Virus record (IMG/VR): IMGVR_UViG_3300028864_000014
Location: 171,319-235,318 of that record
Strand: one strand, 5' to 3'
DNA: 64,000 nt
Shown here: piece by piece, positions 47,072 to 47,985 of the stretch
Layout: each line of letters starts with the position of its first letter
Numbering within the stretch: the first letter of the stretch is position 1
Notes under the pieces: generated by a model
What the model was told of the DNA's origin: nothing
The model's input: only the letters and a program-made list of their open reading frames with translations
Databases searched by the model: none
Translations under genes and position numbers: made by a program

Positions 47072-47578
47072 ATGAGAGAAGAAGAATTAAAAAAATGGTT
47101 CTGTGATAAGTTTAATAATTGCTATCCAACAAAACATTCTAAATATTTAGATAGTGTCTATTGGATTTATGATGAGCAGTATATTAGAAGATTAAAGTTA
47201 TGTAAAATAAATAATCAAGAAATTCCTGCACCTGATAAAATAAAAGGAGTCTGTTTATTTGAGCAAACTAAAAAATTCGAATATTTGTGGTGTGATTATG
47301 ATTATATATGGTCATTCTTTGAAAAAAATTATATTAATGACTATGATAAAATACAATTATTTATAACAAATATAATAAAAGATAGTATAGAACAGTCTTC
47401 TATAAAATATTCACCATCACAACTTAAAAAAATTAAACCTATGATGATGATATTTAAAGATGCATTTCCAATGACTGAAATTGATAATTTAAATAACCAT
47501 AGTATTAGATATGATAACTTGAGTTCAATTAATGATGTATTAGATTTAACAGATAATTCAATAAATAAATTTTTATGA
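47072..47578 (+). CDS. Family X paralog, array 5/13
   Basis: same motif set. Confidence 0.85.
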
Positions 47579-47985
47579 ACAAAGAAGAATTAAGTGAATG
47601 GTTCTGGAAAAAATTAAATTCGTGCTGTCCAGTTTATCATCTGGATTATCCAGATAGTGTGTTCTGGTTTTATGATGAAAAAATAATTAGAAAAATTAAA
47701 TTGTGTAAATTAAATAATCAAAAAATAAATTTTAATATTAAATTTAGCAATAATTGTTTATTTGAACAGAACAATAAAGAATGTTATTTATATTGTGATT
47801 TTGAGAAAATATGGACATTTTTTCATAAAAATAATGACACTGGATATCGTGAAATTCAAAAAAGCATAAAAAATATATTAATTGAAAATCCTAAATTAAG
47901 CAAATATACTCCTCTAATGAGAAATCTTATTTGGACTGATATGATGTATGAAAATAGAAGTTTATCATTAATTACAGACATTTAA
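47575..47985 (+). CDS. Family X paralog, array 6/13
   Basis: same motif set. Confidence 0.85.

Follow-up and report, generated by a model that had tools for sequence, protein, structure and literature searches.

The question raised by this locus is whether a short basic motif, found inside the proteins of the largest gene family of this phage (Family X) and near the C-termini of many small proteins encoded by micro-ORFs, is the same element in both gene classes and, if so, what it serves. The window, that is, the whole stretch of 64 kb analysed here, is the final part of one viral contig of 235,318 bp; motif positions (p) are counted from the arginine (R0) of the pattern R-K-x-K-L-x-x-L. The initial annotation held that this pattern is embedded in every Family X protein, that it occurs about 50 times in total, that Family X may be a tagged micro-protein fused to a second domain and that both classes may dock on one partner.

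The GC content of the contig (G000) is 24%, and Lys, Asn, Ile and Leu are very abundant in the phage proteome. The genes of a contractile tail are found; they encode the sheath, a baseplate hub that contains an M23 peptidase, and tail fibres of a collagen-like type. Identity of the sheath to those of 735-kb records deposited as ‘uncultured phage’ is 51%, and more distant kin are found in Flavobacterium phages and Prevotella Lak phages. Based on the CheckV completeness of the contig (about 33%) and on the nearest sheath relatives, which belong to phages of 640–735 kb, the contig is probably about one third of a much larger genome. The host is likely a member of the Bacteroidota, based on the Flavobacterium and Prevotella sheath kin and on a type IX secretion tail borne by a protein of one relative. 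The phage recurs in peat, where at least 12 metagenome runs contain it. Neither a blastn search with the Family X array nor a tblastn search with one Family X member gave a match among deposited phage genomes. The window also contains eight paralogous tail-fibre-like genes (24174–26066, 40812–43469 and 51125–61074, minus strand), which have a common N-terminus (MINIQLASEEWV...) and several of which contain collagen-like repeats. The Family X arrays are interposed between the tail-fibre blocks on the opposite strand, and a fibre operon contains one Family X gene (26153–26584).

The focal Family X gene (47575–47985, plus strand) is an ORF of 136 codons for which an AlphaFold model was built. Its motif occupies residues 37–48 (47683–47718, plus strand), coincides with a predicted helix (residues 35–46) and scores 18.2 bits with a profile made from micro-ORF tags only. 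The three peptides quoted in the initial annotation are exact to the letter: the first is this focal segment, the second is located in the gene at 47990–48397 and the third, YIRKLKLFKLNN, in that at 46667–47065. The motif is indeed present in every Family X protein of the window, since all 18 genes contain R..K[LIM]..[LIVM] at residue 39–40, and 15 of them contain the strict form RK.K[LI]..[LI]. Thirteen of the paralogues, each with the motif at residue 39–40, form a tandem array (45493–51091, plus strand), the genes of which are packed tightly or overlap by a few bases. The others are a paralogue with a variant motif (44839–45291, minus strand), one adjoining a micro-ORF array (5942–6439, plus strand), two with longer C-terminal tails (218 and 179 aa; 61491–62683, plus strand) and one within the minus-strand tail-fibre block (26153–26584), whose motif, IRKNKLLKLNN, has the top score of the family with the tag profile (23.2 bits).

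Concerning the micro-ORFs, the C-terminal tag is found in 20–22 of the window by the strict form and in 27 by the general form, 10–20 residues before the C-terminus. The window total is thus 37 in the strict form or about 45–50 in the relaxed one, and the earlier count was a fair one. Most tagged micro-ORFs lie in plus-strand groups: three genes of 78–82 aa with a terminal RKxKLxx[LI] tag (1812–2526), about 14 overlapping genes of 59–100 aa with the tag 10–17 residues before the stop codon (6673–10185), and about 11 genes (18566–20604) that include a six-member SH3-like family, from which the second structural model was made. A lone tagged micro-ORF of 45 aa is located at 21253–21390 (plus strand), and a protein of 153 aa (5293–5754, plus strand) contains the degenerate tag RRRKLKNIN. 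Two small minus-strand genes (43975–44458) have the tag module near the N-terminus instead (YIRRRKLEEIN and YLRNKKLENCL), with about 45 further residues behind each; judged by eye, these segments are like the C-termini encoded at 7442–8045. An internal tag is also seen outside the window in a 193-aa protein (G000:C1:117644-118225), where an SH3-like part is followed by a Cys-rich extension of 80 aa.

In the called genes of the whole 235-kb contig the strict motif is found 74 times, compared with a mean of 0.61 and a maximum of 3 in 200 within-gene residue shuffles. These matches comprise 57 C-terminal tags, 15 in Family X and 2 elsewhere. When the tag is masked, its carriers fall into 45 BLAST singletons and a few small families. 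Across the whole viral collection a degenerate form of the pattern matches 457 stretches, which by our own estimate is about the number expected by chance, and these matches are therefore no evidence for the tag outside this lineage.

A profile HMM trained solely on the 57 terminal tags was scored on the proteins of the genome. Fifteen of the 18 Family X members reach 10–23 bits, and the match spans 18–19 residues, including an aromatic-x-x-Asp pattern upstream of the helix. All other proteins score at most 5.3 bits, with three tag-like exceptions (one internal tag at 17.0 bits and two degenerate matches at 13.3 and 9.8 bits). Because a profile built from tags alone separates Family X from the remaining proteins in this way, its scores are well clear of background. 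The similarity is also seen by hhalign, which aligns residues 38–78 of the SH3-like micro-ORF family with residues 13–51 of Family X (probability 90%, E 1.7e-6, 39 columns).

The AlphaFold model of Family X, built with 145 homologues, has a pLDDT of 90 and a pTM of 0.82; the motif forms helix 35–46 (pLDDT above 90), located between strand 25–32 and strand 61–66. The model of the micro-ORF at 19652–19888 (pLDDT 87) contains five strands that resemble a small SH3/Tudor/KOW-like barrel, and the tag is its C-terminal helix (residues 64–76), where the pLDDT is the lowest of the model (about 70), which suggests that the tag helix is less fixed to the SH3-like body. Since the motif is predicted as an α-helix in both models, its conformation agrees between the two classes.

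Foldseek matches of the micro-ORF model are to kin17 KOW, Tudor, PWWP and chromo domains (probability about 0.9, E only about 0.1). For Family X, Foldseek detects no solved relative in the PDB (best E 0.55), a wide structural search with VIA-align gives nothing clearly above background (best Z 4.0), and the matches in the ESM Atlas are unannotated phage clusters only (TM 0.62–0.72). In Pfam and PHROGs, no match of Family X reaches the curated cut-off, ten micro-ORFs and ten longer tag carriers match no family, and among two other paralogue families the single match, to a generic ATPase, is that of one member of the second family. A word-indexed homologue search with a micro-ORF returned the query itself only, and scans of viral contigs with the single proteins P0077 and P0053 gave no matches. 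No known function is found among the carriers examined, and a look-up of RNA runs for the Family X genes gave none.

The proposal that Family X is a tagged micro-protein joined to a second domain holds in part. In its favour are the alignment of residues 13–51 with the C-terminal half of the micro-ORFs and the existence of homologues of the C-terminal half; against it, the protein is predicted as one compact domain, and no micro-ORF equal to residues 1–48 is found in about 0.8 Mb of related sequence. Two homologues which lack the helix (P0038 and P0101) are detected by residues 57–112 only (30–51 bits, hhalign 95%), and a profile of residues 1–34 does not detect them. As these homologues match the C-terminal half only, and given the hhalign result, the sequences favour a mosaic of a putative micro-ORF-like N-module and a C-module. 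By eye, however, a comparable helix and strand are seen at the N-terminus of the helix-less homologues too, and insertion of the motif helix into an existing domain is therefore equally possible.

The C-termini of Family X proteins contain one to five tandem conserved units of about 12 aa (e.g. LSDxTKLNVYTP) with hypervariable peptides of about 10 aa between them (in the window, genes at 48390–48842 and 62144–62683); the first unit is strand 112–116 of the model, and the repeats are found also in the helix-less P0038 and P0101. This arrangement of conserved flanks and hypervariable cores, seen in the homologues P0001, P0002, P0006, P0014, P0019, P0025 and P0029, recalls by analogy that of multi-core peptide precursors. 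No maturation enzyme or protease was recognised in the neighbourhoods examined. In relatives, genes of the IS605 OrfB/TnpB type are located within the micro-ORF arrays (L075:12959-14155, minus strand, and L040:15-1211), and the ORFs right after the insertion in L075 look like fragments of a disrupted Family X gene.

A library of 1.8 billion proteins contains 622 representative homologues of Family X, and only R0, K3 and L4 are conserved in at least 90% of the family. Both gene classes were tabulated for the loci recovered from three clades of phages. In clade 1 (this genome and its relatives) Family X has RKxKLcKLNN and the tags RKxKLxK[LI]N; in clade 2 Family X has RQKKLARVLD and the tags RxxKLxRI[ILF], with Arg at p6 in all 14 tags; and in clade 3 (GC 20%) Family X has RAKKLANILN and the tags R[EK][EQ]KL[KN][RN]IL[ND]. 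Positions p1, p6 and p8 therefore change concordantly in both classes (KLN in clade 1, R[VI][LI] in clade 2 and [NR]IL in clade 3), although three clades provide only two independent contrasts. Nearly every micro-ORF of clade 3 ends in the tag (44 distinct tags in 35 kb), and its arrays have Family X genes interspersed among the tagged ones. At a phage locus of 42% GC, where the Family X homologue lacks the helix, no tags are found within 22 kb. As dozens of unrelated carriers are uniform in their variants in each of the clades, clade-specific constraints act on these carriers and on Family X alike, and the co-variation points to a shared, co-evolving reader, which predicts such a pattern. Since single nucleotide changes separate K, R and N, common mutational drift may also contribute. 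The tag-only profile, the helix in both models and the concordant changes in the three clades support the view that the motif of Family X and the tag of the micro-ORFs are the same element.

The residues conserved everywhere (a hydrophobic p-1, R0, K3, L4 and a hydrophobic p7) lie on one face of 140 degrees on a helical wheel, and the clade-specific positions p1, p6 and p8 flank this face. On the opposite side, p5 is small and apolar (C/A/S/G) in Family X, whereas in the free tags it is charged (K/E/N), in all three clades. This difference at p5 fits a helix whose back leans on the body of Family X and which would display the same face as the free tags. An exposed position of this face in Family X is thus suggested by helical-wheel reasoning and not by coordinates.

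On balance, we consider it probable that the motif is a modular amphipathic docking or ‘address’ helix, with one co-evolving partner reading both classes; the exposed face and the single receptor are what we infer from the observations above. The element would comprise about 18 residues, with a short strand ending in aromatic-x-x-Asp followed by an amphipathic basic helix. The helix would be attached close to the C-terminal end of dozens of small proteins that are otherwise unrelated, and displayed internally by every Family X protein, and one partner, co-evolving with the phage lineage, would read the conserved face in both. Candidate receptors are the phage ClpC/ClpP (timed turnover), a loading site of the virion or of a compartment, and a host protein or nucleic acid. 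Docking on one partner, as first proposed, is the best explanation of the co-variation, but no partner was found. The principle is best seen as that of a targeting or docking peptide, in a new variant and at an unusual scale.

The strand and helix could instead be the capping helix of a large, fast-evolving superfamily of small proteins, passed to Family X by fusion or descent and serving folding, with no shared partner. In line with this reading, the similarity continues upstream into two strands, the carriers include many SH3-like paralogues arranged in tandem, and the helix is well ordered within Family X. Other observations fit it poorly: 45 of the carriers are singletons unrelated by BLAST, the conserved Arg and Lys are typical surface residues, and the helix which should cap the fold is the least confident part of the micro-ORF model. 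Most of all, constraints on folding that act independently do not predict that p1, p6 and p8 switch alike in each clade in dozens of paralogues on different bodies and in Family X. We consider this explanation unlikely.

A second alternative dispenses with a separate receptor: the tag helices would pair mutually and with the Family X helix in a coiled-coil-like manner and form mixed oligomers. The spacing of three to four residues between L4, L or I at p7 and the frequent I or L at p10–11 is suitable for such pairing, and Family X and tagged genes are neighbours in the interleaved arrays of clade 3. The changes between clades are identical in both classes, not complementary, and this fits self-pairing and a common receptor equally. 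The helix, however, would provide only about two heptads, and the like charges of R0, K1, K3 and K6 would repel each other in a parallel pair, which makes homotypic association a rather improbable account.

A third alternative places the signal in the nucleotides and regards the peptide as a by-product: the A-rich stretch of 27 nt at the gene end would be the unstructured initiation region of the next, overlapping gene in a host that does not use Shine–Dalgarno sequences, or a boundary for the recombination of cassettes. The ATG of the next gene is found 23–35 nt after the Arg codon in 39 of the 57 tags, so that the tag overlaps the initiation region of that gene, and the last tag residues coincide with conserved starts of the next gene. 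Bacteroidota favour A-rich leaders. There is also a codon bias: of 32 tags with Ile at p7, 29 use ATA for it, compared with about 60% expected in context and with an ATA share of 47–60% among Ile codons elsewhere, the same K-I-N context included. This bias hints at some history or constraint at the DNA level. Otherwise, codon use inside the tag mirrors that of the genome. R0, and R6 of clade 2, are encoded by AGA, CGA, CGT and AGG, L4 by TTA, CTT, TTG and CTA, and Ile substitutes for Leu in some tags. With synonymous codons of several families in use for both Arg and Leu, selection acts overall on the peptide and not on the DNA. Against a nucleotide signal are also the seven tags with no gene within 100 nt downstream, the lack of long DNA identity between the tags and the motif in Family X, and the Family X copy itself, which lies mid-gene with no start codon behind it and yet keeps the residues and co-varies. 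We regard this explanation as very unlikely. Finally, a chance likeness of one family's helix to the tag, which the abundance of K, N, I and L in the proteome (GC 24%) and the standing of Family X as a single evolutionary observation would make easier, is effectively refuted by the 0.6 strict matches expected genome-wide, by unrelated proteins that all stay below 6 bits with the tag profile and by a three-clade co-variation which cannot come from chance resemblance.

The docking helix can be compared with known systems in which short peptides direct proteins. Encapsulin targeting peptides are C-terminal, rich in Gly, Ser and Leu and extended, and the encapsulin shell has the HK97 phage-capsid fold; the capsid targeting sequence of the T4 internal proteins is N-terminal and cleaved. 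Like these, the RK tag is a short shared peptide appended to unrelated proteins; in those systems one receptor surface reads the peptide. Unlike these, the RK tag is a basic helix of unrelated sequence, found on at least 57 small proteins. The encapsulation peptides of bacterial microcompartments are terminal amphipathic helices of about 18 residues, neither conserved in sequence nor strongly basic. The RK tag is likewise a modular amphipathic helix of about 18 residues joined to diverse cargo, but it is conserved and basic, and no shell genes are seen in the phage. Among the signals read by AAA+ proteases and their adaptors (ssrA, the basic ClpX signal of the MuA type and the ClpX-binding tail of SspB), short C-terminal sequences are the rule, some of them basic and aliphatic. 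The RK tag is also a short C-terminal signal, and the phage has ClpP and a ClpC-like unfoldase; the motif nevertheless lies off the extreme C-terminus, is helical and is found in a folded domain of Family X. Of the defining traits of the cargo, microcompartment and AAA+ systems, the tag has only one, in that a short peptide is common to the termini of proteins unrelated to each other (57 carriers, 45 of them singletons after masking).

Two further comparisons concern the basic core and the position at gene borders. The monopartite nuclear localisation signal, K-[KR]-x-[KR], is bound in an extended, not helical, form. The RKxK core of the tag fits this consensus, but the tag is helical and shows equal conservation of its Leu and its basic positions; such a signal was rejected also because it belongs to eukaryotic hosts, and the present phage is contractile-tailed with its nearest kin among huge phages and among those of Flavobacterium and Prevotella. 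In T4-type and lambdoid phages, promoter–stem-loop cassettes and boundary sequences, which are non-coding DNA, shuffle small early genes. Like them, the tag is short and conserved and is found where small tandem genes adjoin in plastic regions; unlike them, it is conserved as amino acids across synonymous codons. A non-coding regulatory or recombination cassette was rejected on the synonymous codon families at R0, R6 and L4 and the exchange of Leu and Ile.

Timed turnover by the phage ClpC/ClpP is a candidate role for the docking helix, based on several features of the gene content. A cognate pair of unfoldase and peptidase is present in the phage outside the window: ClpP (183.7 bits) and a ClpC-like unfoldase of 844 aa with an AAA_2 domain and a GIGFG (IGF) loop (G000:C1:130390-132276 and 94277-96811). 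Immediately behind clpP are two genes, each with the RK tag, and in clades 2 and 3 Clp ATPase genes are found a few kb from tags. A Clp degron is an unstructured and accessible extreme terminus; the tag is helical, 10–20 residues from the end and internal in Family X. The complex prediction of the N-domain of the ClpC-like protein (residues 1–150) with the micro-ORF at 19652–19888 returned ‘no answer’ (score 0.01), which counts neither way. ClpP is absent from the records of three relatives, which are themselves only 9–36% complete and hence uninformative on this point. In a relative of clade 2 (L041:3657-7303), the Clp ATPase is split into an AAA and lid part and an AAA_2 and D2-small part by an intervening gene of 381 aa.

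A second C-terminal tag is found in this genome. The sequence K-F-N-[ILM]-COOH is the exact end of 34 proteins genome-wide (88–385 aa, both strands), compared with 0.07 expected by shuffling, and is usually preceded by [ND]-[TSA]-x. Three genes of the window carry it (27753–28692, minus strand), and it is abundant in relatives of clade 1. The KFN and RK tags are mutually exclusive, as no protein carries both. A tentative extension of the docking reading, which we think possible though doubtful, is that two orthogonal C-terminal ‘zip codes’ (the RK helix and KFN[IL]-COOH) sort about a quarter of the phage proteins to different receptors. These receptors could be a compartment, the particle or the phage ClpCP, and their specificity would co-evolve with the tags clade by clade. 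In the literature on jumbo and huge phages we found nothing comparable for shared C-terminal tags, import signals of the phage nucleus or phage Clp degrons, and we know of no phage-encoded protein-addressing system on this scale.

The genes of huge phages are for the most part small orphans without a functional clue. A shared, co-evolving helix on 15–25% of the genes provides one point of access for experiments on them, and the natural variants of the K, R and N types are built-in controls as well as a co-variation signal for finding the receptor computationally. Once known, the receptor would reveal the process into which the tagged genes feed, and if the tags are sorting or turnover signals, they would constitute a phage-encoded system of protein addressing.
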